NCBI GenBank assembly: GCA_030704615.1
Contig: CM060731.1
Span: forward strand, 48,050,001 to 48,114,000
Source of the DNA: Takakia lepidozioides
Taxonomy: Eukaryota > Plantae > Bryophyta
DNA: 64,000 nucleotides
Direction of reading: 5' to 3'
The notes under the pieces are model-generated. The model worked only from the letters and a program-made list of their open reading frames with translations. It was not told where the DNA came from and did not search any database. Both the position numbers and the translations under genes were made by a program. Numbering within the stretch: the first letter of the stretch is position 1; the number at the start of each line of letters is the position of its first letter. Positions 1 to 54,125 of the stretch are shown here, piece after piece.

Positions 1-62
1 TTAGGAATTGAACGGCAGAATTGTTTTGTATGATTTTATAAAGAGCTATTTTTTACGATTGC

Positions 63-1278
63 ATGTATAAAAAACGTATACATCCAAATATTCCTCTTCA
101 CTTATTCCTAACTGGTGGAGTGCGCACTGGAAAAACTTTTACTTTACTTCTCATTAACCAAGGTTTGCTTCAATTTTACAATAAACATCCACAAGTGGAT
201 CCTTTAAGAAAAAAAAACTATTTTGATGGCATATACAGGAAAAGCCGCGTTTAATATTGATGGTACCACTATACATTCTGGACTTAATATCCCTCTCAAT
301 TATAAAGAGCTACCATCTCTGGGCTCAGAAAAAATAGATTCAATGTGTAAACCATTTGATCAAGTTCAACTTATGGTGCTAGATGAAATATCTCTTGTTG
401 GAAGTAGAATTCTTGCTTTTGCATATCAACGGTTGAAATCAGTAAAACGAATTCATAATCATTTTTTTGGTAATTTGGACATCATTATTTGTGGCGATTT
501 CTATCAAGCACCGCCTATACGTGACACATGGGTTTTCAAAAAACTAAATACCGGTTCAAATGCTCTAGGGCCTAATTTTTGGCATGACTGCATAAAAATG
601 CTACAAATTGCAGAAGGTGATGCGACAATCAAACCACCAATTCATAGATATATTGAACAACTGCGAACAGCAACTCAAACCCAAGATGATCTTAATGTTC
701 TTAATCAAGAATGTTACCGTTAATGCCCCTCCAATGATCCCACATTTCCACATTTATACTATACAAACAAAGCTATGTTAATTCATAATCAACATGCATT
801 TCAAGAAACCCCTGGGTGTATATACATATTCAAAGCAATTGATAAACATCACGATACATGTCCATTTTTATTTTATTTTTTGGATTAACAGGGCTATTTT
901 TAAATTGCAAGATAATACATCTAATACTGCAGGATTACATACAACAATTTATGTAAAAAACGAAATGTTAGTAGAATTATGTGCTGGAAACTATGCAACA
1001 CGATGGCCTTGTAAATGGAGCATATGGTATATTTAAACATGCTTCAATTTTATCAAATTCAATATCTTTAACATGGATACAGTTTAACAATACAAAAATA
1101 GGTTTAGAAACACGTACAAAAAATGAGCACTTGTACAACAGTGGAATAGATCCATTATGGACTCCCATAGAACCTATCTAAAAAGAAATTCAAATAGGTC
1201 CTAATACGTCTCATTTTATTACCAGAACACAATTTCCCTTTCAATTAGCTGCAGCTCGAACAATTCATCGTTCGCAGA
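63..1278 (+). mobile_element. Helitron-type PIF1 (SF1B) helicase remnant, frameshifted and truncated
   Basis: Helicase motifs occur in order across frameshifted ORFs: Walker A FLTGGVRTGKT, AYTGKAAFNIDGTTIHS, Walker B LDEISLVG, FFGNLDIIICGDFYQAPP, DGLVNGAYG, and QFPFQLAAARTIHRSQ (about 1229-1278). The region is AT-rich and breaks off after RSQ. Confidence 0.88.
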
Positions 1279-1777
1279 GCAGGCAATCATGATTAACAAT
1301 TGAGAACAAGCAAAATGTGATACCATCCTATAACTACATTACCACGAACCCACTTTCCAATGAAGCCATGGTATTATAAAGTTGCGTGAGGACACAAAAT
1401 GTGTCACACTCGCGGCTCGCCACGTCACCACAATAAAGATAAAATAAAAATAAAGTTTCCATTTCAATCATTACAACTACCCCCCGAAACTTGGGCACTA
1501 TCATCAACAAAAACCCGAGCTCCGAGGTGCATGTTGGGCTTCTGAGCAGGCCAACAAGCAGTTGGGGGAGACATCGTGACACTCTGCTACGAGCAATAGC
1601 CTCCGCGTAGTCGGGGAGGGCTGCACCACAAGTTACTCTGAAGAACAGAGACGTCATGCAAAGGAATAGCTTCCAATATCCTGCACCCAAATTACATGTA
1701 TTGCATTAGCTAATGTGAAAGACATAGGGGGGGGGGGGCACATGCTATAACTAGGAGGCGAACACCAAATGAACTTA

Positions 1778-2247
1778 CTCACATGTGAAATCGTCTCCGA
1801 GGTCATTGTCGTCTCCCTCATTGATATCGACATGAAATACAGCCTCCTGCTCTTTGGCGGCAGACATTGGCCCTTGCAACTCTTGGAGGCTCAGTAAAAA
1901 TGGTTGCATCCCATTCCATACCCAACAAATGCCGGCCCGCTGCCTTGCAAGCATGGTATGAAGCTCCTGCAAGACACAATTGTGTTACTAAGATGTTACA
2001 AATTGTGTATTAAGGGAAACAAAGACCACAGAAGAAGAGATGTCAAACCTATTCCAAGAGTCAGATCGACAATGCACGCCCCCGGATGGGAACATGTCTC
2101 ATTAACAGTTTGAATAAAAGCTGGACTCTTCTCCTTGGCCCCTCTCCATGGTGTTCCATTCGACTTTCTCAAACAAACATTCGAATCCACGTAATCCACA
2201 TAACAGACAGGCAGCAAACATGAACTACCCTCCAAAATTAGAAGCAT
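1778..2247 (-). pseudogene. C-terminal remnant of a beta-class N4-cytosine/N6-adenine DNA methyltransferase (N6_N4_Mtase-like), two exons
   Basis: Exon to 2049 reads NGTPWRGAKEKSPAFIQTVNETCSHPGACIVDLTLGI-G. An 82-bp GT..AG phase-1 intron spans 2048-1967. The exon from 1966 reads ASYHACKAAGRHLLGMEWDATIF. Together these match the motif X / SAM-binding motif I / motif II pattern KPxxL..SxPGDxVLDPFxGSGxTxxAAxxxGRxxxGxE. The catalytic (D/S)PPY half is not seen, and an apparent frameshift near 1890 leads into an acidic tail. Confidence 0.7.
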
Positions 2248-2276
2248 GGCTTAAGGGGGACGAACCACATCTACAT

Positions 2277-2333
2277 TTGTGGCCCTCTGAAACTGTATGT
2301 GTCAACGCACTCAATTTTGGAGGGCCACAAGTG

Positions 2334-2373
<40 letters not shown>

Positions 2374-3383
2374 TGCCTAAGAACTGAGTGCGTCAACGCA
2401 CCCAATTTCTTCACTCATAAAAGAGCTCCGTAAACGCATTCAATTTTTGAAGTTTGAAAGATGTCTCTCACTGCTCAGACTTCCCGAACCTTTCTTCATA
2501 GATTAGGGAAAGCAGAGACCGAAAGATGAGAGAAGGGCATTGATAGAACCCTCAGAAATTGCGTGCGTCAACGCACTCAATTTTGAGGGGGTTCTCTTTC
2601 TCCCCTTCATTCACCTCCCTTGATAATACAGTGAGAGAAGTGCAAGGTGTGATAGTGTGAGAACACGCAATTTTTGGGGATGCTCGCATTGCCTTTCTCT
2701 CATCCTTCTTTCTCTGCGGTTTAGGAAATGAGCTTTAATTCCAGCCCATAAGACCAACCAGATTAAGGTGTCGTCAACGACACCTTAATTCCCAGCCCCT
2801 GTTGGAACATGACAATTCACCCCAAAAACAAAACAAACAATAAAAACTAAATAAAAACCTTGGCGAGGAGCCATGTTCGTAGAGGGAAACAGGCTTGGCA
2901 TTAAGGTGGCGTCAACGCCACCTTAATTCCCAGCCCCTGTTAGAGCTTAATTCCAGCCCAAAAGACCAACCAGATTAAGGTGTTGTCAACGACACCTTAA
3001 TTCCCAGCCCTTGTTGGAATATGACAATTCACCCCAAAAACAAAACAAAAAACAAACAAAATAAAAGCCTTGGCGAGCAACCATGTTCGTAGAGGGAAAC
3101 AGGCTCGGCATTAAGGTGGCGTCAACGCCACCTTAATTCCCAGCCCGTGTTAGAGCTTAATTCCAGCCCAGAAGACCAACCAGATTAAGATGGCATTAAT
3201 CTGGCACATTCGGAAAATAAAATAAAATAATATAATATTTTTTTTTAATTTTTTTTTTTCTCGAATGTGCCAGATTAAGGTGTCAACGCCACCTTAATTC
3301 CCAGCCCCTGTTGGAGCTTAATTCCAGCCCGGAAGACCAGCCAGATTAAGGTGGCGTCAAGGTGGCGTCCACGCCACCTTAAT
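2277..3383. repeat. Array of about 9 imperfect palindromes centred on GT-CA-AC, partly within about 211-bp tandem units
   Basis: Class 1 hairpins lie at 2277-2330, about 2379-2411 and 2545-2595. Class 2 (ATTAAGGTGKCGT-CA-ACGMCACCTTAAT) lies at 2762, 2900, 2974, 3110, about 3274 and about 3345. Tandem units are about 2737-2947 and 2948-3157. Confidence 0.9.
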
Positions 3384-3876
3384 CTGGCACATTCGTCTCC
3401 TCTCATCTCCCCCTCCTGTGGTCTGCGACATAGGTGGTTTTGTGTAGAGCAAGGTTAGTATCTTTATAGACAATTCTGCATCAGTTTTGGGCTCAAAATC
3501 AGATAACAATGGAAGTGCTTTTTCGGAATGACTCATTTGTTTTAAGACAGACATTTATGAAGCACCATTTTCCCTGCCTTGCATGTTTGAAGATGTGTTT
3601 TCGGGCTTCTTTTAGCGGTTCCCGGTCTAAATTCGTCGTTTTCATTCATCCACTATCTTTCTCATCCATCTTTTTTCATCGCACATTCATCCATCATTCA
3701 TCCACTCCTTTCATCCAACTCCTTTTCAAAACACACTCAAACATCAATCAACCACTCCACAATGTTGCTACTAATCCGCAAGCTCACTCTTAAAAAAAAA
3801 ATGCTCCCTTTTCGACGCTTGAAGCCCACAGTAATAGGGCTTCCAGCAGGTACAAGTCCGCGGTAATAGGGTGAAA

Positions 3877-3922
3877 ATTGTGAGCAGAATCCTGCGTACA
3901 GTTTTTTCTGCTCACAATCTAG
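3877..3922 (+). mobile_element. Candidate Helitron 3' terminus (hairpin followed by CTAG)
   Basis: 13-bp stem ATTGTGAGCAGAA (3877-3889) pairs with TTCTGCTCACAAT (3906-3918), followed by CTAG at 3919-3922. TTCATCC-rich repeats precede it (about 3640-3720). The spacing and the following base (C rather than T) are non-canonical. Confidence 0.4.
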
Positions 3923-4199
3923 CACACCCTTGCACAAAGAGAGTTATGAAGAAAACGACCTGGCATGAAATTGCATCTTTTTGATGATTTGTACGAGTCT
4001 CCCATTAATTTAACTATTACTACACTTGTACATGTTTCAATACAGTGGTGATCATCACCAAGCTGACTGAATCAAAATGGCGAAGCACCATAAACTAATT
4101 TATGAAGAATTAACCTTGAAGGATGGTACATATCGTCGGCACATAGTGTGTATGAAACTCATATGAAACTGGCAGTGGGTGTTTTACCCGTCGCCAAAT

Positions 4200-4860
4200 G
4201 TTCAGAAGCCAAGTGTACGATTCAGAAAAAAATAAGTGCACAACCGCGAGGACGTTGATCTCATAAGAGAAGACGAGAGAGTTTTGTCAACAAAGCTCAA
4301 AGGAACCCGACCCTTGAGCGTCTTAGGGCAGCTTTCCGGTAGAGAATTGGCAGGCTGACCACGGCAATACACTTCCATCCACGAGGAACTACTTGGAGAA
4401 AAGCAATCGATGACACAGAGAATTGCGATGCTTCTTGCAGTGCATGGCGTCGTTGAGCAACGATACTGCCGATTTGCGGCTCCTGCTGGATCATGGGGTG
4501 ATCGACAACAAGGTGGGGAACAACGTGTTGGGGATGTGGGAGCGCATCTTGAGGGGAGTGAATACATCGTCGTCTTTAGAGTCATGGCTGCTGTCTTACC
4601 AGGACATCCACAACCATCGCAAGAGTCGGGTGAAGCGGTGGTGTCGTGAGGTGTGGGTGCTGTTCTTCTCCAAGCCGTGGACGTTTATGGGGTTGTTGGG
4701 TGCGTGTGCAATATTGTTTCTCATTGCTGTCCAGACGTGGTTTACGGTGGTCAATCCGTCAAATAGAAGTTGGCGTTGGCCGAGTGGCACCTATGTCAAG
4801 CTCGGAATCGAACTAGAAGTTAAAAAACTAGAACCCAGTGGCCGGGGAAAAAGCTCTTAA
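4200..4860 (+). pseudogene. DUF247 (UPF0481) family C-terminal fragment
   Basis: CFLQCMASLSNDTADLRLLLDHGVIDNKVG ... HRKSRVKRWCREVWVLFFSKPWTFMGLLGACAILFLIAVQTWFTV resembles the DUF247 C-terminus with its terminal TM helix. The upstream part is disrupted. Confidence 0.75.
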
Positions 4861-5714: not shown

Positions 5715-6810
5715 ATGAATAGCACCTCGGAGCAGTTGAACCATTTGAGCCTCCATGATCATGTTGAATCAGATTTAGAAGGTGACAAGGAGACGACTGA
5801 TGACAATCATGTATTGCTAGGTTTCTTAGATTCCATTGAAGATACAGAAAAGAAGGTTGCGGAGGGGCACCTTCTTATGAGCAAGGTTGGTGGGCATCCC
5901 AATTGGTTGGAACAATGTGAATAATTCCACATGGTCATCTTCAAGTTTTGTTTGTGAGATTTGTCATGGTGCACTTCAGTTCCTTACGCAAGTATCTGAT
6001 GATATGCTTGAACAAGAACCTGCATCTCATGTGTATTGCACTCTACTTGTGTTCATATGTCCAAACATGAGATGCTTACAACAAGACCAACAGGAGCAGT
6101 ACAAGCAGTTGGAAGAAAAACCTTGTCGGAGCATTGAAGTGGTTCGGAATCAATTGTTGGATCCAACAAACTCTTCATCTAGTGGTATTGTGCACAAAGG
6201 CCTCCCAAGTGGCTTCAAGTCAGTAAGAGAGAAGAAATCATGGCCAGAAATGGAGCTTTTATTTGAGTGCGAATGGATAGAAAATGAAGTTGTCAACAAA
6301 GAGTTTGGTTTGAAATCAACAAGAGATAGGGTGCAAGAGCTTCTAGGAGATTATGTGCAAAAGGCTGTGAAAAAAGGCTGGTGAGGAGTTCACAGCCACG
6401 GACACGGAGGAAGTCCAAGAATCGTCTTTAGATGAAGAGATTTTGAGATAACAATTGCAAGCGCACCTGAACAAGTATTGAGGATCTCAAGCTCACCAGA
6501 GGCTAAGCCCTTGTGGGTTTCATCAAAGGGACAACCAAAGAACGCTCACATTCCTCCATGCCCTCATTGTGGCAAGTGCCGTGTGTTTGGGCTTCAGATC
6601 ATGCCCCAACTGCTTAGCTTTTTGGAACTTGACAATGGGTCGAATTCTCTGGATTGGGGGACAATTGTGGTGTATTCGTGTGAGGACTCTTGTGCGGTTG
6701 GTGTCAGTACTACAGGCTATGCAGAGGAGTTTGCTTGGGTGCACTTACATCCTTATCATTTTTTACCTCCTGGTCTTGAGTCGTCCTCACAACACTCCGT
6801 TCAAATATAA
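5715..6810 (+). pseudogene. PDCD2: Intronless, frameshifted PDCD2-like (programmed cell death 2) copy lacking the MYND finger
   Basis: Motifs VLLGF, SKVGGHPNWL, CEIC..LQFLTQV, LLVFICP..CLQQDQQEQYK and the PDCD2_C region IPPCPHCG..FGLQIMPQLL..LDWGTIVVYSCEDSC..YAEEFAWV are split over three ORFs with no introns between them. Confidence 0.85.
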
Positions 6811-9300
6811 AAAGCCTTTGTTCGAGCTAACTTTTGACATAATCAGTATGGAATGAAGGAGAGAGACATAATTATTCAAGTCTGCCGAAATGACGCCGTA
6901 GTGTGGATTCCCCATGGCGTGGGGTGCACTTGGCTTGACTTGTATTTGAGTGATGAGGTGTGGAGTGAGCCCCGTGATGTGGCATTGGCGCAAGGTGACG
7001 TGGCGTGAGCGCAGTTGCGCTCACGTGACCAGGCTCACGCCGAGGCATCCCTGCTCCCCAGCAACCGCCGCCAAGAAAGAATTGCCTCTTAAAAATGCTA
7101 GGGATGGTTCCATGAAAACCATCCCATCTGCCCCCCTGTAATTCATGGCATGGGCCCCTGACATATTAAATTACATTAATTCAAGGGTGCCAATCCGCGG
7201 GAATACACTCCACTTCTTCCTGGGCGCGGTGACGCGGTCTTCAAGTGTGCCCATTCCCAAATAGTGTGTTGGAACTACTCCTTAACTACAACCAAGTCTC
7301 GAAAACAATGGCATGCACTTGCCCAGTGTTCGAGGTTCTCAGGGGAGCAACTTTATGCTGTGTTTGGCCACGGCAAATCCCCCCTCAATGGAGGGGGAAG
7401 CGAGCCAGCCTCTTCTGTTTCCCCAGAGTTTGAAAATGAGGACGTTAACTGGAAACATGTGAGGGCCTCCACGAAAACAAGACTTGCCTTCATCAGATAG
7501 ATTACCACAAGCTCCGCATTTAAATGGCCGAAGCACTAGATCTCTGTTTACTTTGTCGTGCGTATACATATCGCTACACAACTACATCGCTGTCCAAAAC
7601 CACACAACATATGTGCACACCACACACTAGTATACTACTAGTCCACCACTAGTCCAGCCACTAGTCTACAACTAGTCAGTCACTAGGCTGCCACTATGCT
7701 GCCCACTATGACAGTCACTAACTAGTCCACACAATGATAAAAAAGAAGAATACAAGCACAAGCTCATGCGAGCTCACAAAGCTGAAGCATAAACTCATGC
7801 ATTGTGGAGAGGGATGAGACTGCACGACGCGTCTCACTGCGCCATGTTGCTCAGTTGGTGCAGCAGTACCCTGATTTGTTGCCACAAAATTTTATTGGGT
7901 TTCTTCCTTCTACGAACAACATTTCATTTTCTTTCTTGTTCTTCCTTTTCTTTCTCTTCCCTCATTGATTCAAAACGTGCAGAGCCTCTTTTAGCTGTTC
8001 TCCCTCACATTGTTTCCGAACATGCCGATAAGTGTCAGAGATCTTGTCGACTCCCTCTATTGGGCTTTGTTTGGAAGTGGTACGGTCCATGGTGCACGTG
8101 CCTGATTTTATCAGCTGTGCTGCTGCTGCTTCCAGTTGACCATCTACCATTGCTGGTTTCTTGTACCTCTTAATCCACAATGCCTCACTCTTGTGCTTGA
8201 AATCTGGTTGCCTTGGACTGGATCTGCACGCGCACTCTATCCCTGCCTCAACAACAATAATGCACAGATCCTGCGCTGAGAATGAAAACCAGCAAACACC
8301 CCATCCCTACTTACCAAACACTAGTTTCTATGCTGAATTGCTGACAAGATTTCAATAACATACCAGACGTTCACCATTTTGCCTGCATTGTCAGACGATT
8401 GATTCAGGTTTGAAAAATAGTCCTTCCAAAGCTTCTTCTCGTCTCTATTTTCGGGTTTTGGACGTTTGCCTGCAACCCCACTGGCAATAACATGTCAAAA
8501 CAATTCAGAACCACATAGATGCACTCCATGAGCTAACTTACTGATGAAAAAGCAGGGAAAAATCTAGTAAGAGGACAAGAGAGCCCAAATATGTTCTCAC
8601 CACGCTGTCCTTGACCTTCTGTCAAGGCAGCAGCTAGCTTTTCTTTCACCTAAGGCCTATATAATCCAAATCCAAAGAATGATTTTAACTATTTAAAAAC
8701 CTAAACTAGAGTGAAAGACAAAGGATTCAACCAACCCTCAATCCGAAGAATCTCTTGTGTTCACTGCTTATGTCTGTAGTCAGTTAGTTTGGGTTGGTCT
8801 GTGAGAACCACCAGGTGTAGCTGAGCGCCAGAGTTTTAATCTGAACTTCCTTAGCACAACCGTCAACCCTCCAAAATACCTTGCAAACTCAAGGGAAAAA
8901 ACCTTGAGCAAACCTTCTCTCATGCCCTGGTGTATAATACCGACAGTAAGAGCTCTGTTGCAGAGCAAACAGGGATTCTAATCAAACCCAACAACTAGGG
9001 GTACAATCCAGTCCACAAACTGTCAGAGCCAGTTCCTCCTCTCCTTCCTTGACAGACTTTTCCTCGACCCACATGACAATAGCGGACCTTGTCAATGCTG
9101 TAGTCCTACCGTTGTGAAGGGTCTCTAAAGAAGTCCTGCCAGCGCTGTTCCATGCTCCACCGTTGACCTACGTGCCAGATGTACGCAAAGCTTCAAGAGG
9201 GCAGAGATTATAGCCCTTGTCTGACCATCGTGTGTGCTTCTTCGGCCAAATTAGGTTAGTTTCTGGATAGGTCAACTCCACTTCCAAGTTTAAAGAATAG

Positions 9301-10850
9301 TCAGCAAATGTGCAGTGGTAGCATTCAACGACAGAGGAGAGGGAGGAAGTGATCTTAAGTGGCAGTGGAGTAGCCAAGAGATCCCGGTCCTCCCTTCCTA
9401 CACTTACCTGGGCGTTGAGTTCTCCTCCAATTGTAATTGGGATGCACATATCCGGAAAGTTGTTCAAAATGGCAAGGGCAAAAGCTCTGGGGCTCACTAA
9501 ATCTTTCCGCTGCAGAGGGGTCAACTCTGAGGTTAAGAAAACCATGCTTTGTCGTGTTATTAGACCTGCCTTGGAGTACGGATCTGCTATATGGGTTGAT
9601 AACTCCAACCGGGCTAAGTCTCTAGAATCCATTCAAGTGGGGGTGATTAAGGAGTGTATGTCAGCATGCTCCAAAACAGCCAATGTGGCTGTTCGGGGTG
9701 AGTTTGGCGTTCCGTCCTTAAGCTCCCGACAAGATGAATTCAAGGTCAGATGGTGGGGTCAGCTGCAACATATGCCCAACACCAGATATCCTAAGTTAAT
9801 CAACTCTATATCTTGGAATCGACTCTACCCCTGTTTACCAACTTTGAAAGTCTCGAGGCTGAGCCAAAAGCCCAGGCCCTCCTGAGGCCTAGTTTTTGGG
9901 CAAATCACACACAGCAGATTGATGCTTGTGTGAAGGGATTTCTAGAGGATATCTGGAAAACCCGGATTAATTCTATATATGGAGGTAAGTCTTACTACCA
10001 ACGTCAGCCCCTGACAGAGGTAGGTTCTGTCCCTTTTGTTCCCGCTCAAACTGGGCGCGGGGTCAATGGCCACAAGGCTACGGCAAACAACGTCTTATGA
10101 GTACAATCTATATCTTGGAAACAGGACCGCCCTGTCAAACAGGCCAAGTCCTGGCAGAAGAGAGTAGAAGAGATCCTCAAGGACCTGGACCTGGATCCGC
10201 AAGTCTTGACCCTGCTGGGTAAATCTGACTTAGAGGCTGTAGTGTCCTCAGCCATGTCTGTTGCCATGAGATTGTCTGATGAAAATGAAGTTAGGCAGAA
10301 AACTTCCCTGAACTTGTTTCCAGTCAGTGACATGGGGGAGGACATCTTGGATGACCTCAAGGGTCTACCCACTCTCGGCACTAGACTGAAATTTAAAGTC
10401 AGGGCAGGAAGCCTACCTTTGAACAGCAAACAGAAGCAGAGAGGAAAGGGAGAGTGCAATTGCCCGTTGTGTGGGCAATCTGAAGACAGTATTCATTTTC
10501 TGATACACTGTCCGGGGTTCTCTCACCAAAGAGACACTCTCTTCAAATCTATTAAGGCAATTGTGCCTGTACCCCTGTTTACCAACTTTGAAAGTCTCGA
10601 GGCTGAGCCAAAAGCCCAGGCCCTCCTGAGGCCTAGTTTTTGGGCTAATCACACACAGCAGATTGATGCTTGTGTGAAGGGATTTCTAGAGGATATCTGG
10701 AAAACCCGGATTAATTCTTTATATGGAGGTAAGTCTTACTACCAACGTCAGCCCCTGACAGAGGTAGGTTCTGTCCCTTTTGTTCCCGCTCAAACTGGGC
10801 GCGGGGTCAATGGCCACAAGGCTACGGCAAACAACGTCTTATGAGTACAA
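9301..10850 (+). mobile_element. 5'-truncated LINE family A (RTE-X-like) containing a nested family A 3' fragment (9819-10106)
   Basis: Encodes the RT thumb (YTYLGV) and C-terminal CCHC (CPLC..EDSIHFLIHCP). Outer TSD is TTTAAAGAATAG (9289-9300 / 10851-10862). Inner TSD is TCTATATCTTGGAA (9805-9818 / 10107-10120). Confidence 0.92.
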
Positions 10851-11470
10851 TTTAAAGAATAGAGGTGCCAATCTTTCCAGTTACTACCTTCAATTAGCAT
10901 CCCTGACAGCTTAGGAGGCGCCATAGCTACCACATGCTCTCGGTCCTTGGCACATTGCCAAGGTGGATCCTGCTTCCAGCTCCAGAGCCCAGAGTCTTAA
11001 TCTGTTACATGATGTGAGGCCTCTCGCATGACCGAGACGAGAAGACAGGGCCTTGGGTATGGAGTCCACATCCACACTCAGGAGAACGTCGGAGCAAGCT
11101 GCCATCCCCTCTCATGAGTGAGAGAGACGCAGAAAATATTCTCCGGTACAACCCACCCCGTCCCTTCGACCCGATGCGAGAAACAATGGCACCACTTTCT
11201 CAAGATGGGAAATGATCACCCAGCTTCATGGACCATGCATGGCTGTAAACCATCATTTGCTTCTCCATGTTGCTCTTACTTGCTTTCTTCTCCGCTCCAC
11301 ACATCACAAATGACTACCTAGCAAGTGCCCTCTCTAGCATTACGCATAAATAACATGCGTATTAAAACTGTAGGATGTATGCGTTGCTGGTGTAGTGTGC
11401 CAAGTGCCAACCCACTTTCGAATTTCGGTAAACTCTGACACAACACACTTCTTTCGTAGGTATTGCTTGT

Positions 11471-13662
11471 TCACCAGTAATCCCCACAAGAACAAAACCA
11501 CACATATGCAGAAGACAAATTCCATCCCCAAATTGAAGAAATCCATGTTGAGCTGAAGAGGTTGTATCAGCAGATGAAGGAGGCTGGATATATGCCTGAC
11601 ACGCGCTTTGTGCTGCATGATGTGGAGGAGGAGCGAAAGGAGGTTTCTCTTTGCTATCACAGTGAGAAGCTGGCCATTGCTTTTGGGCTCATCAGTACAG
11701 CTCCTGGGGTGCCTATTCGCATCATCAAGAACCTTCGGGTGTGTGGCGACTGTCACGTGGCCACCAAACTCATCTCAAAGATTGTTGGGCGAACAATGGT
11801 TGTCCACCTCAATGCTGCTGCACCCTGGTACCTTTCTCACCCCTCTATCCTCCATCATTTTTCTCACCTTTGCTACTTCCTCCCACTTGCCAGCTGCAGC
11901 ATAGATGTTTGATAGCAGCACATAAGTTCCAGCCTCTTGTGGATACAATGTGAGAAATCTTTTCGCCACACGTTCTGCAACCTCCACTTTGTCATGAATT
12001 CTGCACGCACCAAGCAAGGCCCCCCAAACCCCAATATCTGGTTCAACTGGCATTTTGTTAATGAAGTCCTCTGCCTCATCTAATTGCCCTGCACGGCCAA
12101 GAAGGTCCACCATGCAGCCAAAATGTTCTAGGGTAGGAGTGAGGCCATGATCTCGAGTCATGGAGTCAAAATAGTGATGGCCTTCTTCCACCAGGCCCAC
12201 ATAGCTACATGCAGATAGAACACATATGAAGGTGATACTGTTCGGATTCAAGCCTTCCTTTTGCATTTGTTCGAATAGTTGCAGAGCTTCCGTACCACAC
12301 CCCTGCTGAGCATATCCTGCAATCATTGCGTTCCATGAGACCACATCTCGTTCAGCCATATTGTTGAGCACTTGACGCGCATCCTTAATGCTCCCACATT
12401 TTGCATACATATCAACCAGGGTGTTCTCCAAAATTATATCTAAGGGGATTTTGGCTTTCATGATGTCAGCATGGACCTCCATGCCCTTCTCCAGGGCTGC
12501 CTGACTTGCACATGCATTTAGAACAGAAATGAGTGTGACCTTGTCAGGCATCACCCCTTCTTGTAACATTTGCTCGTATATGTCTAAAGCATCCCTCCCA
12601 TTCCCATGCTGAGCATATCCAGTGATCATTGCATTCCATGAGACCACGTTTCGCTGGGCCATGTTGTCAAACACCTGACGTGCCTCCCTTATGCTCCCAC
12701 ATTTGGCATACATGTCAGCAAGGGCAGTCTCCAGAATGATATCCTGCCCAATACCAGCTTTGATGATGTCAGCATGGACATCTTTGCCCTTTTCCAGGGC
12801 TGCCAGGCCGGCACATGCATTGATAATGCAAATGAATGTGACCTTGTCAGGTGTCACTCCCTCTTGTATCATTTGCTCATAAATCTCCAAAGCCTCCCTA
12901 CCACGCCCATGTTGAGCATATCCCGAAATCATTGTGCTCCATGAGACCACATCTCGTTTACTCATGTTGACAAACACTTGGTGTGCATCCTTCATACTCC
13001 TGCATTTGGCATACATGTCAACAAGGGTGTTCTCCAACTTCCATGTATGATGCAATTCCAGATGTCATTATGTCAGCATGGACGTCTTTGCCCTTTTGCA
13101 GGGCTCCAAGGCTGGCACATGCCTTGAGAATGCAAATGAATGTGACTTTGTCGGGCATCACAGATTTTTGTATCATTTCATCATATATCTCAAAGTCCTC
13201 ACTACCACACCCATGCTTGGCATATCCTGCTATCATTATATTCCATGTACATATATCTCGTTCGGGAATTTTGTCAAACAATCTGCGTGCATTCATTATG
13301 CTCCCGCACTTGGCATACATGTTGAGAAGGGTGTTCAGGAGAAAGATGTTTGGCTTAAATTCAGTTCGGACGATGTGGGCGTGCACCTGCTTTCCCTCTG
13401 CTAGGCGTTTCCTGTTGATGCCCTCCTGCAAGACACATACATAAGTATTGGAATCTGCTCTGAAGCCTTGTTGATCCAAAACATGCAGTGCCTCCTTAAG
13501 TCGTCCTGCCTTGCATAGCGCCCTAACATCCCCATAAGTGCTAGAAGAAATTCTGCTGAGTGCCTCTCTTGGTCTTTGAAAAGGAAGGGTGATGGTGGAG
13601 GTGGTACCCTTGCCACCAGTCTGATGTCCAACAAACAAGTGTGCCTGATTCGACTCTGCCAT
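11471..13662 (-). pseudogene. PLS-class PPR-E-DYW RNA-editing factor with a frameshift (about 13045) and an internally inverted DYW segment
   Basis: PLS repeats (LVDMYAKCGS..ARQVF..RDVVSWNAMI) and E1/E2 end at GCSSIEVDN (about 11800). The DYW core ([21 protein letters not shown]) is on the + strand at 11508-11804. The terminal CSCGDYW* is on the - strand at 11494-11471. Confidence 0.92.
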
Positions 13663-23181: not shown

Positions 23182-26100
23182 CTATCGTCTCCGTTTTTTC
23201 CTTCCTTTACCAAGTTGCCCGGATTTGAAGGCAGATTCTTGCTCTTGTAAAAATGACATAGCCTTTCGGTACTTTTCATCACGTTCCTCCGCTGCTACAG
23301 TTCTCTCTTTAGCCCTTTCCTCAGCCAAAAAGTAATTATCTTTCCGCAGCTCACGGGCAGCACCCTTGGCCTCTCGCTTTGGCTGCCGCAACAGCTTCTT
23401 TTTCTCTGCTCTCTCGCGATCGGGATCATAGTCCCTCCCTTGCGCAAAACTGTAGGACATGCTTGGGGTCATGAAGTGTTGAAGTGTGCCCAAATATTGT
23501 AAACATAATACAATGAGGTGAAGTCATTCCAGTATGAATGAATAAGGGTCACATATAGAACTTACTTCTCTTCAAACCTCGGATTGAACTGCTTGATAGG
23601 CACAGGCTTGTGCATTCGCATGCGCAAAGGCTGGCGCAACTCATGCTCTTTCATTTTCTCCGTCATTGACTCTGTTACCTGCAAGGTCAAGGTAAGCAAG
23701 CCTTTGGGTAGCACACTCTCCCTTGAGATTGCCTCTACTACTGCACGGATTGGGGAGAACACTTCAGGAAAGGAGACGAGATCTTTGTAGATGCTGACAA
23801 ACCCCTGCAGTGTCTGCAGAACACTCTGTAGGATGCCAATCCTGCACAATAGAGAAAACCAGTTACTCTACTACTTATATACAAGTGCGCCCAGGAAATA
23901 GATACCTCAACATGGTGTAGCCACATGGCATTAAGACTTCTCATCTCACTCCATGAGCGGGAAAAGTACACATGGAGGGAGGGTGCAGCAGAATGTGGCT
24001 GTCTAATATCCCCGAAGGGTCTCCAGGTACTAACCTTTCAGAACATAGTCTGTTCTGGCCTGCAGAGAGCTTTTTATGGGTTTCTTGATGATGCTTGCAC
24101 AGAGGGCACCTTGCACCTTGAAATACTGGAAAGTTGCAGAGGGAAAGGTACACACAAAAAATATAGAGTTTGTCTCATGTAAAGCAAATTTACAGAGCCT
24201 ACTACACACAGCCTGACGGACCCATTGGTGGTTGAAGGATTAAACCCAGGATCACCCTCGTTATGGAAAAGCAAGGCACACAACCCAACCACTCGCTGCC
24301 TGCTCAAGTGTCAACATATTCACCTGAAAGAATCGGACTCAAAAATGGGTGATGAGTCATCTGCTGTGAGCAGGCCAACAAAGTCCAGAGGTTGCAGCTC
24401 CACTGATTTGGACTCTAAATTTGACAGCAGCAGCCATGGCCTTGATGCCACAAACTCTATGAGATATGCAGGACATTCCTGCCAGATAAAGACATACTTC
24501 AGTATGTGATGAAATGCATAGAAGTCCACTAACCCGCTTTTCATCCTTTCATTGGAAAACCTATCACCAATGTGACACTCTTGAAAAACTCTGATCTCAC
24601 ATTTGAGAGGTAACCAAAGTTCAGATAACATAGTAAAGAAGAGCTTTCAAAGCGGAAAACATAGGGAACAGTACAAACATCAAGGAAGTATACTCTTCTA
24701 CGTATTCGATAAATAAGAAGCCGTGAGGAGGTAGTGTGTGCAATCTGGTGGACTAACAAGAGTAAGGTTGGAGGTGGCCTTCGCTGAGTTCTTTGGTAAA
24801 GCCGAGAGTAACAGAGCATGCAAAAAATTGAGAGCTTCTGGACAGAATCTTTGTGCTGGCCTCATAACCTGCAATCACCCAACAAATGAGCACTCCACAC
24901 TTAGATTGACTCCACTAACTCCAGTGCAATTTGAGGAAAGTCTTTAGTCATTTAAAGAAGAAAAGAAGAACTCCATTATATACAAGACTGAAGCCATGAA
25001 TGCCACTCATAATCATTTCCTAATGTGTGTGTGTGAGAGAGAGAGAGAAATGAAATGAAATGGTGCTTTATAACGTCCGCGGAAAGCTCATAGAGCTTAT
25101 GGGACAAAATGGAAGAAAACATGAGAGAGGAACAAATCCAGAACCCAAGAATAAGAACTAATGTTCTAGCGATTGTCTAAGGGTGAAGGCCTCGTGCAGG
25201 TAGGCCGCCAAGCATTTTTTATCCTCATAGTGGAAGACATCAGTGAGAGTTTAGGTCCCACTGAATAAACAGTGGAATCTCCCACGGGTCTCGTAGTATA
25301 GAGGGCAGTAGAAGAAGAAGTGTTCTTCAGTTTCAATTTCCTGGCTGCGCCCTATGCAAGCTGGACATAGGCGGTCCTCCTGTTGCAGGTTTTCCCATCT
25401 GCCAGTCTCTATCCGTAGGTTGTGGGAACCCACCCTGAACCGCCTCAATGCCCTCAGGAGGGAAGGAGATAAGGGTGCTGAAAGGTAAGAGAAATGAAAT
25501 GAAATGAAATGGTGCTTTATAACGTCCGCGGAAAGCTCATAGAGCTTATGGGACAAAATGGAAGAAAACATGAGAGAAAATAGGAAAACCAGAGTCAGAG
25601 AAAAGAACTATTGTTCGAGTGATTGTCTAAGGGTGAAAAAGAGAAATCACCGAAAGAAGAAGGGAGCAGATGAAGGAGCCAACAGCAATATCATGGCCAC
25701 AGTTGATGGGGCATCGCAGCAAGTACTCAGCCATAAGGAGCATGGCAGGTGTCATAACCCCATGCCGAAAATCAGACGGTGGAAATATCATAGACCAAAG
25801 TCTCAGTAATAGCAGCGTTCGCATGGAGGGCCAGCAACTGATGTCCTCTGCGAGAATCACAACAACAAAGAAGCAGTACCATGCTTTCAAGCTTCTTGCA
25901 CTTTTCAGGCTAAAGTTACTGATCCTCAGGCACTCTTCCACCCCTTGAGCTCAACTAAATTCCATGAATCCTTCCCTTGCAAGGACTAGGGCAACCTTAA
26001 CCTAAGTGTCTCATTGAGGTAGGTGAAAAACCCCTTACTGACTTCATGGCAACATAGTTCCCACACAGGACCTGTGATATTAAAAGCATCGATCAACAAT

Positions 26101-29100
26101 AAATGGTCAGCAAGCAAGCCAGCAAGCCCAGCGCCCCCCTTCGAGATTGCCTTCTTGCACCTGAACTTTTTAGCTTTTCAGAAAGTTGGCCCCGCATCCG
26201 GATAATGCGCTGGCGTGCACAGACAGCAGCAAAATAGGGTGTCTCTGCACTCATCTCTATCAATGGCATAACAACTAAGTTGACTCTCCGCATACACAAG
26301 GGCTTTTCACCAGCAAGGGCTGCGAAGTACTGAAGCAACACACTGTAGAAAACCTGTAAAACAAAACCAGATTGAGGTGAGTTTGTTGTAAGGAATCTGT
26401 CACTTGAGTGGCACACTCTGTCAATCAAACTTAAAGAGTTCACAATGCAGACCCTGCCATGTACCATGTCAGCAACAAGAAAGTAAGGAAACACAAGCCA
26501 AACCTGCATTTTTCTTCGATTCTCAGCTGCCAAACTAATTGCGTTACAAGTTCGGATCCTTTGTACTGCAACTGCAAGGTCCTCTACAGATCTATGAGCA
26601 ATCAGCTGCTGAAAGTCCTTCAGTGTCTGTGGGGCATCAATCACATATGGGAGGCTGTCCACATTTTGGACTTCCTCAACAGGAACTTTTGGAGCCCTTT
26701 TTGGGCCTGTTTTTCCCCGCTTTTCCTCATCTGACAAGCCATCTTTTCCCTTCAGCTCTCTGCCAGCCCTTACGGATTTGCTTGCTGAATGGTCATTGTT
26801 CTTGTTGTTTGGCACTTTCCTGGAAAAGTTCTCCGGCACAATATTATCTAGTGCAGCAGCTTCATCATCACTTTGCTCCCACTCATCCTCTGAATAGCTC
26901 TCCTCATCAGAACCCTTATCACTGTCCCCATCCGACTCCTCCTCATCATCAGGCAAATCTTCATCGTCACCGGATTCATCGCCAGAATCCAAGTCACCAC
27001 CTGATTCTTCCTCTTCTTGCTCCTTCCCCCTCTGAGCTAGCACTTCATCCACCCACCCTTTCTCTTGATACTCATCCTCCATCACAAAGTTCTCACCCAA
27101 ATCATCACCAGATATCTCTGGTCCCTTCTTCCTTTTCTGGCGCTGCGAACCTGCATTCTCATCATGGTCACTTCCCTCGCTTGCCTCCTCGTCAGAATCT
27201 GATTGCCCAAGCATCCGTTTCTTACGTTTTTTCTGCAAGAAAGTCGGAGCAGCTCATAAGCTTCTTTGAAAAGACAGTTCTCAGTTCTGACTTTGTAAAA
27301 AAATCTTATTTGCTAGCAGAGTAAAAGGAGCTATATCTCTGGGGTTCCAACATTTGTACCTAGCATAGCAGGTACTCTGCCTACAATAAGCGAAATAGAA
27401 ACACAGAGACAACAATTATGAGCATGAAAATCTCCAAGTGTTTCAGTCTGCCAGACTGATAGGTTACAGCCAGTGACCACATGCAAACTGACACAAACTC
27501 CTTACTTCCAGATCTTCCAAGCGGGTGCGCTCATCTTTGGCGATCTCTTCTGCTGTCTTCTGTCGATCAGAAGCATGTGCTCTCATCTCAAATGTCATCT
27601 CCTTCATCAGCTTGTCATAATCATCAGGCTTCTCCTGTATCCATACCCACACAAAGCCATTGCAAACTTTATGTCACAAACTCTGCAGCAAGGCAACTTC
27701 ATGTCCCTCTCCCCTCTGCCCCTCTCATACACAGGCACCTCACTCCTCTCTAGATCTCTCTCTCACACAGACAATTCCCCTCCATAAACGCTAGGAAAAA
27801 CCGGGAAGTCATTCACCTTCTCAGCACTTGTGTTCTCAGCTATACGGGAGGTACTCTGGGGTGGAGCCTTTGGCCAAAAGAGACTTGAGAGCATTCATCT
27901 TCTGAGGACGCACTAGAGACAGCAATGCCTGTGACTGGGCCAATGCCGTAAACTCGCTGTCCAGCTTCTCCTTCAGGTCTTGATCCTCTTCCTTCTCTTT
28001 CGACTTTTGTGCCTGCATTTGAGCTTGGTTGACCACTTAGTATCATTAAAATCCTCTCGAACTCAATTTCTCTCTCTCTGTGTTGAGACACACCAACCAG
28101 ATCAAATCTATCCAGGAATTGTGCCTGTACCTCTGTTTACTAACTTTGAAAGTCTCGAGGCTGAGCCGAAAGCCCAGGCCCTTCTGAGGCCTAGTTTTTG
28201 GGCAAATCACACACAGCAGATTGATGCTTGTGTGAAGGGATTTCTAGAGGATATCTGGAAAACGCAGATCAATTTTTTGTATCAAGGTAAGTCTTACTAC
28301 CAACGTCAGCCCCTGACAGCAGAGGTAGGTTCTGTCCCTTTCTGTTCCGCTCAAACTGGGCGCGGGGTCAATGGCCACAAGGCTACGGCAAACAACGTCT
28401 TATGAGTACATTCTATTGAGACACACCAACCAGACAAAGCTCCAATTCTAAGTACACATGTCGCATGTGTTGAGACTCTCCATATACAATCAAACACACA
28501 AAGAACATATTTCCAAACAGTAGAAAAAATAAACAACCACATACGTCGGAAGCGTACAGTAGCTTGCCTTGTAAAACTTGCTCTTAGCAATAACTTCCTC
28601 CATTATCTCCTTCTTTGAACGCTGCTGCTGCTCAATCCAGATCCAACATCCGCACAAAATGCATGCACTTAGTACCATTTACTTAGTGAGAACGACCGCA
28701 CCTGATTTAGTTGAGTACATAGAAGGAATATTTTAAGATAAAATTACAAATCTCAAATTTTAGGAGCTGGAATTTGAGATAAGAAGGGCCCCCTCAGCGC
28801 CTCTGAAGTTCTTGTCCTTCCACACATAGTGATAATTTTCTATCTGTCATATGATGTTAGTCATCCTCGAAGTGCTAGTACATACCCCAAGCCCAACCCT
28901 CCGAGATCCCTGAGATCCAGATATGGTTGCAGAGACTGTGTCCAAACAAAAAGCCCACCTTGTGTTCTCCTTCAGCCTCCACATCCTTGCCTTCATTTTT
29001 GCTTGTTAGCCCACCTCCAAAGTGGAGTTCCCTTACCATCTCTGCATCCACTGGAGTTCCACCATTCCTGCTGGTTAATACTAACAACAGATTAAGTGGA

Positions 29101-31355
29101 GTCTCTTCTCCCCCTCTCTGCGTCAAATAGCCGCATCAGACCGATAGTAGGGTAGATGTCCCTTTGGGTGAAACTGGAAGGTAAGTGCTACTGCAGTGAG
29201 CTTTCTGAAATGGTAGTGGGCCCCACTTTTCTCTCCCTGATCCCCTCTCTTCCCATCTTCTGCTCTGTCATAACTGGACGTCGGATCCACAGAGACAAGG
29301 AAACAGCAAGCAAACACTCTCTCTCCTCTCTTTCTCGTAACTTCCTTCCACATCTCCATGTGACAGCACACAAGATGCAAATAAAATTTGGTGAGAGATT
29401 GGTACAGAATCATCAACTGACAGATCAACAGTAAGAGGAAAGACTAGAATGGGTAAGGAATGCGCCAGCTACAAGAAAATCAAAAGATACTGCCTGGAGA
29501 AACAAAGACATACATCCTCGATCATCATCCTCATCTTCTGTTGAGACCTCGAAATCATCCAGTGTTGAGAGAGCAGTGCCCCCGTGCGTAAGGACCTCGG
29601 TCTCCTCCCCATCTCCGTCATCCTGTAAATTAAATTTGCTCTTCCGCTGCATTTGAACCTAAACATCCAGCAGTGACAATATCGTTCCCACCAAAAAAGG
29701 GTCATACCACAGATATATTCGGCATTAAGCACCAGGTCTTGAAGACTAGAGCAGACAATGTCAGAGTTCTGATATGATCATTCAAGAGATCCTAGGCTTT
29801 TAATTAAAGATTTTGAAACCAGTGACATAATTGTCATTGCTATCAGGGTGAAAGATTGGTACCATGCGCTCCCGTTGGAAGCGAAGGATAGCCTTGTCAT
29901 CATCAGCAAGATTCTCATCTTGCTCCCCAAATCGATGGTCTAAAAAAGCATTTGCCTTGCCCCGCTGCTTATACTCCTGCAGCAGTGTCTTCTTTCTCTG
30001 CAGTGGCCAGTCAGTCAGTCAAAATTAGCATTGCATCCAGTAAACACCTCCACCTGGTCAACCACCAACAAAAGATGCAGTTGCATTGCCATTCACCATT
30101 GGTAAACATGGTTATCGTGATGAGTATCCAGTGGAGCAAATGTAAAAGGGCCCACTACTTCATCTCCAATACAGAGGTTGTGACGACTAAGGTTTAATTC
30201 CCCACATCAAACACTTGTAGCAACACATGATGTACCCATTGACCATCCCTGGGACGGTTCGCTACAGAGTGCCTGTCAGCCCAAAAATCAGCCCAAAATT
30301 CCACGTAAACTGACAACCTGACAGTTACAGGAAATTCACGCTGTCCGCGTAAGGGCTGCCATCAACATCGTGCACATCCTAATATCCACTGTTTCAATCT
30401 ACCCTCATATCGATCAAACATATGTAAATGTACTCAGAAGCTTTGTTTGCCGTAGCCTTGTGGCCATAGACCCCGTGCCCAGTTTGGATAGAAACATAGG
30501 CAATAGGCACTACCTTTGTGAGGGGCTCACTCCAGTAGTGTGACTTACCTTGATATGAGCAATTAGTTCAGGCTTTCTAGTGAGGGGCTCACTCCAGTAG
30601 TGTGACTTACCTTGATACAAGGAATTAGTTCGGGCTTTCCAGATTTCCTCTAGAAAGCCCTTCACACAAACATCAATCTGCTGTGAGTGAGCAGCCCAAA
30701 AGTTAGACCCCAACAGGGCCAGGGCTTTAGGCTCAGCCTCGAGATTTTCAAAGTTGGCAAACAGAGGTTCAGGAACCATGTTCTTGATGTTCCTGAAGAG
30801 GGTCACTCTCTGGTGAGAATACCCCGGACAATACATCGGAAAATGAATATTGTCTTCAAGTTGCCAGCGCATGGGTGATTACAATCTCCTTTTTCTCTCT
30901 GCATCTGTTTATTGTTCGAAGGTAGGCTCCCCACCCTGAGTTTGAATTTCAGTCTAGAGCCGAGGGTAGGTAGGCCCTTCAGATCATCCTTAAGGTCCTT
31001 GCCCATGTGACATACTGGAAACAAGGTCAGGGAAGTTTTATGCCTAACTGAACAACATATATAGTGGAATTAACACTGTACTTCACCGTAAGATATACAA
31101 GTATCGAGCAAAGCTCTTGGTGCAACTTACCTTATCAACAGCCGCGGACCGTGACAATCCAGCGCGTCGGCCTTCACCCTTCTGCTTCTTCCCAAGCACA
31201 TCGAACTTGCGCCGGGTCCATAGGGTCTCAAAAACATTGCTGGAATGGACCGGTCCCCCGCGGGAGTTCTTTGTGGTAGCAGATTCCGATGGACCAGAGC
31301 GTGCCTTCTTCTTTGCCACCGCTGCAGGCGCACCTGTCTTCCTCTTCTTTCCCAT
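23182..31355 (-). CDS. NOP14: Nucleolar protein 14 (SSU processome), multi-exon, apparently intact
   Basis: Exon 1 reads NVFETLWTRRKFDVLGKK..GLSRSAAVDK and exon 2 RKKTLLQEY..FLDHRFGE. Further motifs are SKKEIMEEVIAKSKFYK, DDYDKLMKEMTFEMRA, ISGDDLGENF, LPYVIDAP, IRTCNAISLAAENRRKMQ, SDFRHGVMTPA, PIKQFNPRFEE and DYDPDRERAE..KGAARELRKDN..QESAFKSGQL. The splice sites checked are canonical; not every exon was checked. Confidence 0.95.
25052..25639 (-). mobile_element. Two tandem 5'-truncated LINE family B copies (about 25052-25487 and 25496-25639) in a NOP14 intron
   Basis: Encodes the RTE-X-like C-terminus FRVGSHNLRIETGRW..LCPAC..ETEEHFFFYCP, with (CATTT)n tails. AGAGAAAT occurs at 25044, 25488 and 25640. 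Confidence 0.9.
28102..28415 (+). mobile_element. LINE family A 3' fragment with a 19-bp TSD in a NOP14 intron
   Basis: Encodes FTNFESLEAEPKAQALL..NNVL*. TSD TTGAGACACACCAACCAGA lies at 28083-28101 and 28416-28434. Confidence 0.9.
30427..31050 (-). mobile_element. Diverged LINE family A subfamily 3' fragment in NOP14 intron 1
   Basis: Encodes DDLKGLPTLGSRLKFKLRVGSLP and FANFENLEAEPKALALL. It contains an internal duplication of about 62 bp near 30517-30630. Confidence 0.85.
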
Positions 31356-52774: not shown

Positions 52775-53570
52775 CAAGTTGAGTAAGGAAATGGAGCCAA
52801 AATCTCCGAGTGAGATTGAGGAAATGGCTAAGGTTCCGTATCAGCAAGCCATGGGATCTCTGATGTATGCAATGATTGGCACCAGGCTAGACATTGCCTG
52901 TTCAGTCGGAGTGCTTAGTAAGTTCATGCACAACCCAGGACCTCAGCATTGGAAAGCACTCAAGAGGGTGATTAGATATATGAAAGGGACTGCGGATACA
53001 TGTCTAACTTACAACGAGCAGGACACTGGAGCATCACTAGAAGGATACAGTGATGCAGATTGGGCAGGAGACACAGATGAGAGGAGATCCATATCTGCCT
53101 ACTGCTGTGTAACGAGTCGAGGTGCTGTGAGCTGGAGCAGCAAAAGACGGCACACCACTGCTCTGTCCTCGACTGAGTCAGAGTATATGACTCTAACTCA
53201 TGCGGCTAAAGAAGCCATTTGGATTCGAAGGCTTCTTGGTGAACTTGGCTTCAGTCAAGAACAGCCAACGAAAATGCATGCTGATAACAGGAGCAGCATT
53301 GAGCTCAGCAAGAATCCTGTTTATCATGCCCGGACCAAGCACATAGATATCAAACATCGTTTCATTAGAGAGAAAAGATTGGTTTGGAGATTGAGTTGGT
53401 TTTCTGTAATCTGAGGACATGGCAGCTGATGCACTCACAAAGGCTCTATCTAAAGAAAGGCATTCTAGATGCATGGAACTGATTGGGTTAAGCCTCCATC
53501 TTCGCTGAGTGGGAGTGTTACAAGTCAGCTCAGGTTTAGTTAGGTAGGGTTCTGTTAAGCTTGGCCATCG
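52775..53570 (+). mobile_element. Ty1/copia RT-end and RNase H fragment with PPT and start of 3' LTR
   Basis: Encodes YQQAMGSLMYAM..TRLDI, GYSDADWAGD, SWSSKR, ALSSTESEY, DNRSSI and HARTKHIDIK. A PPT-like GAGTGGGAG is followed by TGTTA (about 53507-53520). Confidence 0.92.
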
Positions 53571-54125
53571 TGCTTCCACAATTTCAGAAGAACTCATGGG
53601 AGCGTTGTAAGCCTTTGAAATAAACTCCAGTTTATCAAGGCTGTCTTGAACCATAGGAACAGCTTTTCCAACTGTGTCCTTCCATACTTCATCGGAACCC
53701 CTCATTGTTAGACCTAGAAATTCTGCCAAGGGTACTGTAGTGAATTTCAAAGGTTTCGACAATGTCAAACGTTGAAGTCACCACTGCACCCTTAGTAGTC
53801 CTCGGCGCTTGTACTTGCTGACAGTTTTTTCGGCTTGTACAAACGTTGAAGGCCAACCAGAATCTCTTGTCATACCACCCTGGCGGTTGGAGTTTATGTC
53901 ACTGTATAGCTTGTCCCAGTATAATTTCTTCTGAGACCTAACAAGCTTATTGATATCTCTGCGGATCCGGTAGTACTTAGCCCACAATTCTTTGTTGGTT
54001 TTCAAATTGCAACACTCTTTAAAGAGGACCCGTCTCTCAGCTATCTTGAGCTTAATGTCATTGGTCCACCAATTAACAGCTCTACCGCATACAATTACTT
54101 TCCTCCCAATGATCTTGTCAGCCAA
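53571..54125 (-). mobile_element. Internal LINE family A fragment (APE-RT linker, diverged subfamily)
   Basis: ADKIIGRKVIVCGRAVNWWTNDIK..KKLYWDKLY matches 41570-42120. Confidence 0.88.

Follow-up and report, generated by a model that had tools for sequence, protein, structure and literature searches.

The DNA considered here, called the window below, is a stretch of 64,000 nucleotides from the bryophyte Takakia lepidozioides (assembly GCA_030704615.1, contig CM060731.1, positions 48,050,001 to 48,114,000 of the forward strand), numbered from its first nucleotide. An initial annotation had proposed that its first 4 kb hold a Helitron carrying a spliced, prokaryote-type DNA methyltransferase of the beta class (N4C/N6A). 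We favor a different origin for the methylase-like sequence: with a probability that we put at about 0.8, an accessory locus of a DNA transposon left a dead fragment at window 1467-3390, comprising the three last exons of a ParB-like/methylase-like gene together with the palindrome array belonging to that gene (Table 1). The intact gene would join an N-terminal ParB-like domain to a C-terminal domain resembling the beta-class amino-methyltransferases, and the window would keep that end of the latter which binds S-adenosylmethionine (SAM), namely helix X, a motif I interrupted by a phase-1 intron, the motif II/III region and the tail. The piece would have come to adjoin a truncated, decayed Helitron PIF1 helicase by rearrangement, by nesting or by the passive capture of a fragment.

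Table 1. Features at the start of the window (strand given as a point where none applies)
Feature	Position	Strand	Basis or remark
PIF1-like (Helitron-type) helicase pseudogene	63..1285	+	Pfam match, motifs read directly, GC profile
Junction and 3' flank of methylase-like gene remnant; base-composition shift	1286..1466	.	GC profile, helicase not continued
Probable last exon (exon C), frameshifted, weakly supported	1467..1650	-	Exon-C queries, L010 synteny
Exon B: motif I end, GRHxxGxExD (motif II/III region), acidic tail	1779..1966	-	Translation, alignment, tblastn
GT-AG phase-1 intron, 82 bp	1967..2048	-	Divides second Gly codon of GxG motif
Exon A: ...PWRGAKEKSPAF... (helix X) to VDLTLGIG (motif I start)	2049..2241	-	phmmer, tblastn, alignments
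Imperfect palindrome, 29-nt arms, centre GTCAAC, then A37 tract	2274..2370	.	Repeat and inverted-repeat scan
About 9 palindromes TTAAGGTGGCG-TCAA-CGCCACCTTAA, CG-N4-CG core, partly in a 210-bp tandem unit	2380..3390	.	
13-bp-stem hairpin directly before CTAG; possible Helitron 3' terminus	3877..3922	+	Inverted-repeat scan

The window exons and the gene that they close

Exons A and B were checked and searched separately, each by its own translation. Both of these minus-strand exons translate as the initial annotation had written them, and the 82-bp GT-AG intron that it placed between them (2048-1967) is there. Exon A lies within the minus-strand open reading frame (ORF) 1996-2247, ending ...PWRGAKEKSPAF...VDLTLGIG, and the minus-strand ORF 1818-1979, which overlaps exon B, contains ...ASYHACKAAGRHLLGMEWDATIF; the splice junction reads G/GT...AG/GA in phase 1, with 82 nt removed. 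Joined in this way, the exons retain the SAM-binding motif I with its GxG and the acidic residue that ends strand 2 (window VDLTLGIG/AS...GRHLLGMEWD, for a family consensus of DLTxGTG/AS...GRHxxGxExD).

A phmmer search with exon A against 1.84 billion representative proteins returned 10 matches, of which seven were genuine homologues (46-54% identity, E = 3e-7 to 2e-4) and three (P0005, P0007 and P0008) were repeat artefacts. All seven genuine homologues are short ORF calls that lose similarity exactly at the exon end, DLTxGTG. The contigs of the exon A matches, together with 47 metagenome loci collected with a profile of the upstream exon, gave a working set of 56 loci (262 kb; loci are cited below as L001 and so on). 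At the DNA level, the similarity of window 1-4100 to these loci is confined to poly(A); at the protein level, exon A matches L001 (tblastn E = 1.4e-11), exon B of L006/L007 matches window 1979-1890 (tblastn E = 7e-7), and window exon B aligns with L001, L007, L008 and L009. The intron falls in the same Gly codon and in the same phase in all nine loci where both exons could be placed, with GT..AG borders in eight of the nine and a length of 82-175 nt. This conservation of position, phase and borders shows that the splice is a feature of the gene and not a chance GT-AG pair.

In every locus that is long enough, exons A and B close what is predicted to be a long spliced gene starting with a ParB-like domain. 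The order is best seen in L008, where, on one strand, a 215-residue ORF (...VCDGNHRRQAW...) is followed by several more exons, then by an exon VDLILADIPEGLPVPG...LHDDGAI (the N-half exon), an exon ending ...PWRGPREKS...VVLDCTAATG and an exon GSSIHACR...RHIVALEAD. Six loci (L001, L002, L008, L041, L052 and L053) share the same-strand order of DGNHR region, 2.5-5 kb of further sequence, N-half exon, exon A and exon B. The DGNHR signature is typical of ParB/Srx-type domains, and the protein language-model clusters nearest to the N-terminal region are DUF3723, with ParB_N at lower rank; we consider the region probably ParB-like on these sequence features.

The N-half exon has 35 homologues in a collection of 5.8 billion proteins, none of them with a Pfam annotation. 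In the 33 that were aligned, D-L-x-x-A-(D/E)-x-P-(E/D)-G-L-P-V-P-G and L-H-D-D-G-A are invariant or nearly so, giving the motifs VDLVIA(D/E)xP(E/D)GLPVPG and LHDDGA by which the exon is recognized. Natural ORFs in L017, L025 and L031 run uninterrupted from this exon to motif I. No natural ORF spanning exons A and B was found in the loci: in L010 the two exons are in frame with an intron that holds a stop, and L025 has its exon B in a different frame. In L025 (3-600), L029 and L031, the part upstream of the methylase-like domain (...CWYLECKRTW..., acidic and lysine-rich) is continuous with the domain in one 466-codon ORF, so intron content varies between subfamilies. Copies in other loci are under purifying selection, the ratio of nonsynonymous to synonymous substitution rates (dN/dS) having values of 0.10 and 0.35 in the L008/L009 comparison and of 0.22 and 0.27 in that of L007/L010. 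L008 also contains a long satellite (1040-4358 and 6426-7488), tandemly repeated in units of about 193 bp, upstream of the ParB-like exon and again inside the gene between its ParB-like and methylase-like parts; its minus-strand translation repeats ...HHFPPPTDHSRPRHH....

The window itself holds the last three exons, with introns, of such a gene in decay, a dead copy with at least two frameshifts. Elsewhere in the family exon B runs on as ...LFNxVLKPL... with an acidic tail, and the window copy reaches a continuation of this type only via a 1-nt shift at a T-run near 1897, which marks it as frameshifted. The apparent stop behind the exon B tail is part of a GTAAGT donor at 1778, in the same phase as in L010. 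Beyond this donor we place the probable exon C: queries with the exon C of L008, L009, L017 and L025 all matched window 1592-1618 (LPDYAEAIA), at E = 0.3-4.4 each, and the best reciprocal match is at L010 2922-2969, in syntenic position. The family pattern for this exon, LPxYAxDMA ... RVxxxIDxSA, is weakly conserved and in the window is split over two frames, the second of which carries ...ARVFVDDSAQ..., resembling ...PRVLRFIDQSAS... of L017; a stop codon stands at 1464-1466. Neither the N-half exon nor a ParB-like or other exon of the family was found anywhere in the window, in agreement with the original description of this copy as a remnant whose catalytic half is not visible. Because the ParB-like part and the half with the catalytic loop are gone, the window copy encodes nothing functional.

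The methyltransferase-like domain and its motif IV

Taking profile and structural comparisons together, the family is predicted to have the permuted amino-methyltransferase fold of the beta class, with the GxG SAM pocket kept and with a conserved, non-canonical motif IV. PF01555 (N6_N4_Mtase) was the sole Pfam family to recur in our searches, always at the matching segment of its profile. The best score came from exon A of L008 (E = 1.8e-4, 22.0 bits, profile positions 160-200); P0003 and L001 gave E = 0.13-0.17, and five of 10 further ORFs gave E = 0.025-0.26, with L031 covering positions 30-193 of the 221 in the profile. When a trimmed exon-A profile was run against the PDB, M.RsrI, DpnA and M.MboIIA came out on top, at the segment of helix X and motif I (E about 0.16-0.19); the same profile with its flanks untrimmed had produced G-protein-coupled receptor noise, and the trimmed version was cleaner. 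A profile of the N-half, run against the PDB by sequence, found no match. ESM protein language-model features of the N-half placed 22 of its 30 nearest clusters in PF01555.

For the N-half alone, AlphaFold gave an unusable model, with a predicted local distance difference test score (pLDDT) of 50. The natural ORF L025:597-1208, modelled from an alignment of 38 rows, reached a pLDDT of 68.7 and a predicted template-modelling score (pTM) of 0.71, and this model matched CcrM best (E = 6.6e-8; TM-score normalised to the query, 0.58), followed by M.BceJIV and METTL3 (E = 1e-6 to 7e-8 over all three). The order of motifs in L017, L025 and L031, from a IV-like loop to helix X to motif I, is that of the beta-class permutation, of which the window holds X-I-II/III only.

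The loop at the motif IV position sets the family apart. In the 33 homologues it reads (D/E)-(I/Y/F/L/M)-P-(E/D)-G, strongly conserved, and not (D/S/N)-P-P-(Y/F/W); in the L025 model a first strand (ADLVIAD, strand 6-12) leads into I-P-E-N where beta-class enzymes have P-P-Y. Two points of the initial annotation can be judged from these results. Its assignment of motifs X, I and II to a beta-class amino-methyltransferase stands insofar as the exons encode helix X and the motif I-III end of a PF01555-type, methyltransferase-like domain, with every Pfam match below the gathering score. The (D/S/N)PP(Y/F)-like motif IV for which it had suggested looking was not seen in the fuller homologues, the conserved (D/E)-(I/Y/F)-P-(E/D)-G taking that place instead.

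Palindromes, helicase remnant and rival readings

Upstream of exon A, the window carries an array with 13 inverted-repeat pairs and a 210-bp unit repeated 2.2 times (2730-3189). Within 2391-3127, CGTCAACG occurs five times, when 0.36 occurrences would be expected over all 64 kb; the palindrome is TTAAGGTGGCGTCAACGCCACCTTAA, with the centre ...GGCG-TCAA-CGCC.... The related loci L008 and L009 have palindromes as well: the 18-bp GGCCTCGGATCCGAGGCC is present in four copies in L009 and three in L008 (expected, 0), spaced about 100-125 bp apart, at a distance of about 1.3 kb from the gene on its 3' side. The CG-N4-CG centre is common to the window and the L008/L009 palindromes. Thus the hairpin array that the initial annotation had described is real, and it fits the ParB-methylase-like family, as the L008/L009 palindromes indicate, and no Helitron structure; we best read it as part of that element family. 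Within 2274-2370, the imperfect palindrome is directly followed on the plus strand by a pure A37 tract. Its look is that of a small retroposed unit ending in poly(A), or else of slippage during replication at the array edge.

The PIF1 helicase that had been noted as convergent to the spliced exons is present (plus-strand ORF 223-723, Pfam PIF1 E = 1.8e-14), but as a pseudogene. Its motifs can be read directly, from the P-loop GGVRTGKT (about 112-135) through VLDEISL (about 375-395) and CGDFYQAPP (about 490-516) to TIHRSQS (about 1262-1282), in a frame interrupted several times by stops and frameshifts, and the gene ends abruptly at about 1285, right behind the last of these motifs. The guanine-plus-cytosine (GC) content is 0.29-0.37 (about 0.32) in the helicase part vs. 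about 0.48 from about 1350 on. The rest of the helicase was not found among the ORF translations of the window downstream of about 1285, nor was a second copy of anything in 1-4000 found elsewhere in the 64 kb. Of the two parts of the protein by which a Helitron is recognized, Rep (HUH) and the PIF1 helicase, the window thus shows a truncated PIF1 pseudogene, and Rep would sit upstream of the window start. The hairpin and CTAG described at 3877-3922 are present too, as the sole perfect hairpin+CTRR outside the array on both strands of the 64 kb; the base behind CTAG is C where a canonical Helitron has T. About 150 bp behind this hairpin begins the C-terminal part of a plant DUF247 gene (4080-4860, plus strand; ORF 4423-4857, Pfam E = 3.5e-13, profile positions 303-401 of 401). 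Seemingly only the 3' third of that gene is present, so a DUF247 gene may have been the insertion site of the composite element or may be truncated by it.

That a Helitron family carries the intron-bearing beta-class N4C/N6A methyltransferase as functional, DNA-marking cargo, as initially proposed, now appears highly improbable, and by the conditions that the initial annotation itself set for a refutation this model largely fails. The adjacency in the window and the methyltransferase-like peptide speak for it, but tblastn with the three helicase ORFs of the window detected no PIF1-like sequence in any of the 56 homologous loci, and in other contexts the gene comes with a ParB-like N-terminus and palindromes of its own. 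That lack of PIF1, the absence of any further family exon or second copy from the window, and the interruption of the helicase within its ORF at the junction together argue against a methylase cargo of a Helitron family; the missing catalytic half and frameshifts of the window copy, and the lack of a canonical motif IV in the family, add to this. We find it scarcely credible that the methyltransferase similarity is spurious altogether and that the exons come from some unrelated protein, of a plant or a transposon, with a chance GxG-type motif. Every sequence-profile match does fall below its curated threshold, and the N-half profile drew a blank in the PDB; yet a single Pfam family recurs, each time at the corresponding part of its profile, the independently predicted structure matches CcrM, M.BceJIV and METTL3, and the motif order from the IV-like loop to X-I-II/III suits the beta-class permutation. 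Two further candidates, a methyltransferase domain of a DIRS-type retrotransposon and a giant-virus insertion, were dropped once the ParB-like architecture, the conserved introns and the palindromes had appeared.

Less easily dismissed, though still unlikely in our judgment, is that a Helitron passively captured a genomic fragment (the three last exons, their introns and the palindrome array) as inert cargo, so that a single non-autonomous Helitron derivative would extend from before the window to the CTAG at 3922. The helicase shares its strand with the hairpin+CTAG 2.6 kb further on, no equal of which was found outside the array when 128 kb of strand were scanned, and the piece is antisense and intron-containing, as Helitron captures typically are. 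Such a capture is harder to square with the truncation of the helicase ORF at the junction, where no remainder follows downstream, with the C in place of T behind CTAG, with the lack of a second copy in the window, and with a 5' end (5' TC) that would have to lie beyond it.

Our preferred reading, a dead piece of a ParB-like/methylase-like accessory locus, has several observations to contend with. Besides that rare hairpin+CTAG on the helicase strand, which suits a Helitron whose boundaries enclose the fragment, the window palindrome is not the same sequence as the L008/L009 ones, and its array lies 5' of exon A, whereas theirs lie 3' of the gene. Searched singly, the window exons found no match in Pfam, NCBIfam or PDB sequences, and none of the family sequences reached the gathering score of PF01555 (26.7 bits). 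For the ParB assignment the grounds are the DGNHR motif and the language-model lead; Pfam and PDB sequence searches of the N-terminal region did not detect ParB. Nor was a transposase recognised beside the gene in the loci, where Pfam was run on the long ORFs of L034, L041, L047 and L048; in L007, a DUF7869 ORF was seen instead. In that locus two methylase-like exon copies in inverted orientation (186-800, minus; 2856-3873, plus) flank the DUF7869 ORF (1406-2413, plus; Pfam E = 2.5e-45), which contains a motif, ...MDNCAKDNKSKYN...GHTHEDVD..., of transposase-like look; the arrangement may reflect another carrier element or a nested insertion. DUF7869 was rejected as a trait of the family, since it adjoins the domain only in L006/L007, and no paper found in our literature search mentions it.

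For the intact family, we suspect that the element-specific palindromes would be an analogue of parS, recognised by the ParB-like domain, and that the methylase-like domain would then place a mark on the DNA of its own element or act on it in some other way. The fragment could then be, though we advance this tentatively and would not bet on it, the relic of an undescribed self-recognition system of land-plant transposons in which a ParB-like reader fused to a SAM-binding, CcrM-fold domain with a conserved D-I-P-E-G loop in place of DPPY acts on the CG-N4-CG palindrome arrays of its own element. The fused domain would in that event either deposit N6-methyladenine (6mA) or N4-methylcytosine (4mC) or do something other than amino-methylation, and part of the system, with its array, may have been taken along by a Helitron in the window.

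Known systems and surroundings

The closest parallels come from algae. In Ectocarpus, ParB-like + N4C/N6A methylase accessory proteins are reported on a Sola1 transposon (PMC12477816). This is likewise an accessory gene of a eukaryotic DNA transposon that joins a ParB-like to a prokaryote-type amino-methyltransferase domain, and binding and modification of the DNA of its own element have been proposed for it; the family described here differs in coming from land-plant-type contigs, with DUF247 and pentatricopeptide repeat (PPR)-DYW neighbours, and in its conserved non-canonical motif IV, and the window copy is just a 3' relic. In the red alga Bostrychia, the Plavaka accessory genes PAG2 and PAG3 comprise an N6-adenine-methylase-like gene and a ParB-domain gene (10.1101/2025.02.11.637652; Curr Biol 2025), the latter adjoining tandem inverted-repeat arrays (10.1101/2025.02.11.637652) that parallel our palindrome arrays. 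In that case ParB is fused to a 2-oxoglutarate (2OG) oxygenase and the methylase to SET, in separate genes, whereas the present family combines its two parts in one. Fusions of ParB with a helix-turn-helix (HTH) and Dam-type methylases were described in chlorophytes and chytrids by Iyer, Zhang and Aravind (PMC4738411); the Dam type is a different class of methylase.

Among bacterial and phage enzymes of PF01555, CcrM, M.RsrI, M.MboIIA and M.BceJIV resemble the family in the permuted order IV ... X-I-II-III, in the helix X/motif I segment and, as modelled, in the CcrM fold. Their motif IV is (D/S/N)PP(Y/F/W) and their motif I DPFxGSGTT, in contrast to (D/E)-(I/Y/F)-P-(E/D)-G and DLTxGTGAS in the present gene, which is moreover spliced, eukaryotic and below the Pfam cut-off. 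Marchantia DN4MT1a/b offer another prokaryote-derived amino-methyltransferase in a eukaryote; they are host genes, expressed in spermiogenesis, that cluster with bacterial N4C methylases (10.1101/2021.02.12.428880). We found no description of a ParB fusion, palindrome array or transposon context for them, and detected no sequence link between them and the present family. The window also recalls the capture of gene fragments by plant Helitrons, in its PIF1 remnant, its antisense, intron-containing foreign fragments and its 3' hairpin with CTAG; it departs from that pattern in its single copy, truncated helicase and non-canonical flanking base. We did not find a land-plant ParB-methylase-like family described in the literature.

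As one more decayed copy, the window sequence matters little in itself, and the analysis removes a tempting but wrong headline, that of a Helitron with methyltransferase cargo. Working outward from the fragment supports a ParB-like/methylase-like family with its own palindromes in plant-type contigs from many samples, with a phase-1 intron inside motif I, dN/dS of 0.10-0.35, a CcrM-like predicted fold and a non-canonical catalytic loop. It is this family, paralleled in algal transposons, that is the object of interest, and a palindrome array close to such a relic is not to be taken for Helitron hairpins.

The remainder of the window is filled in large part by many copies of a retrotransposon of the long interspersed nuclear element (LINE) type (9100-10900, 27900-28500, 30500-30900, 33600-36000, 40300-43800 and 53100-54200; the RVT_1 match at 34574-35914 has E = 1.7e-31), in each of which a cysteine-rich C-terminal ORF is conserved. 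The window also has ordinary land-plant host genes: one or more PPR/E-motif/DYW-type editing-factor genes on both strands at 11562-13662 (PPR_2 E = 3.6e-65, E_motif E = 1.8e-22), and, as their neighbours, genes of PDCD2_C (5887-6810) and Nop14-like (26093-27235) type.

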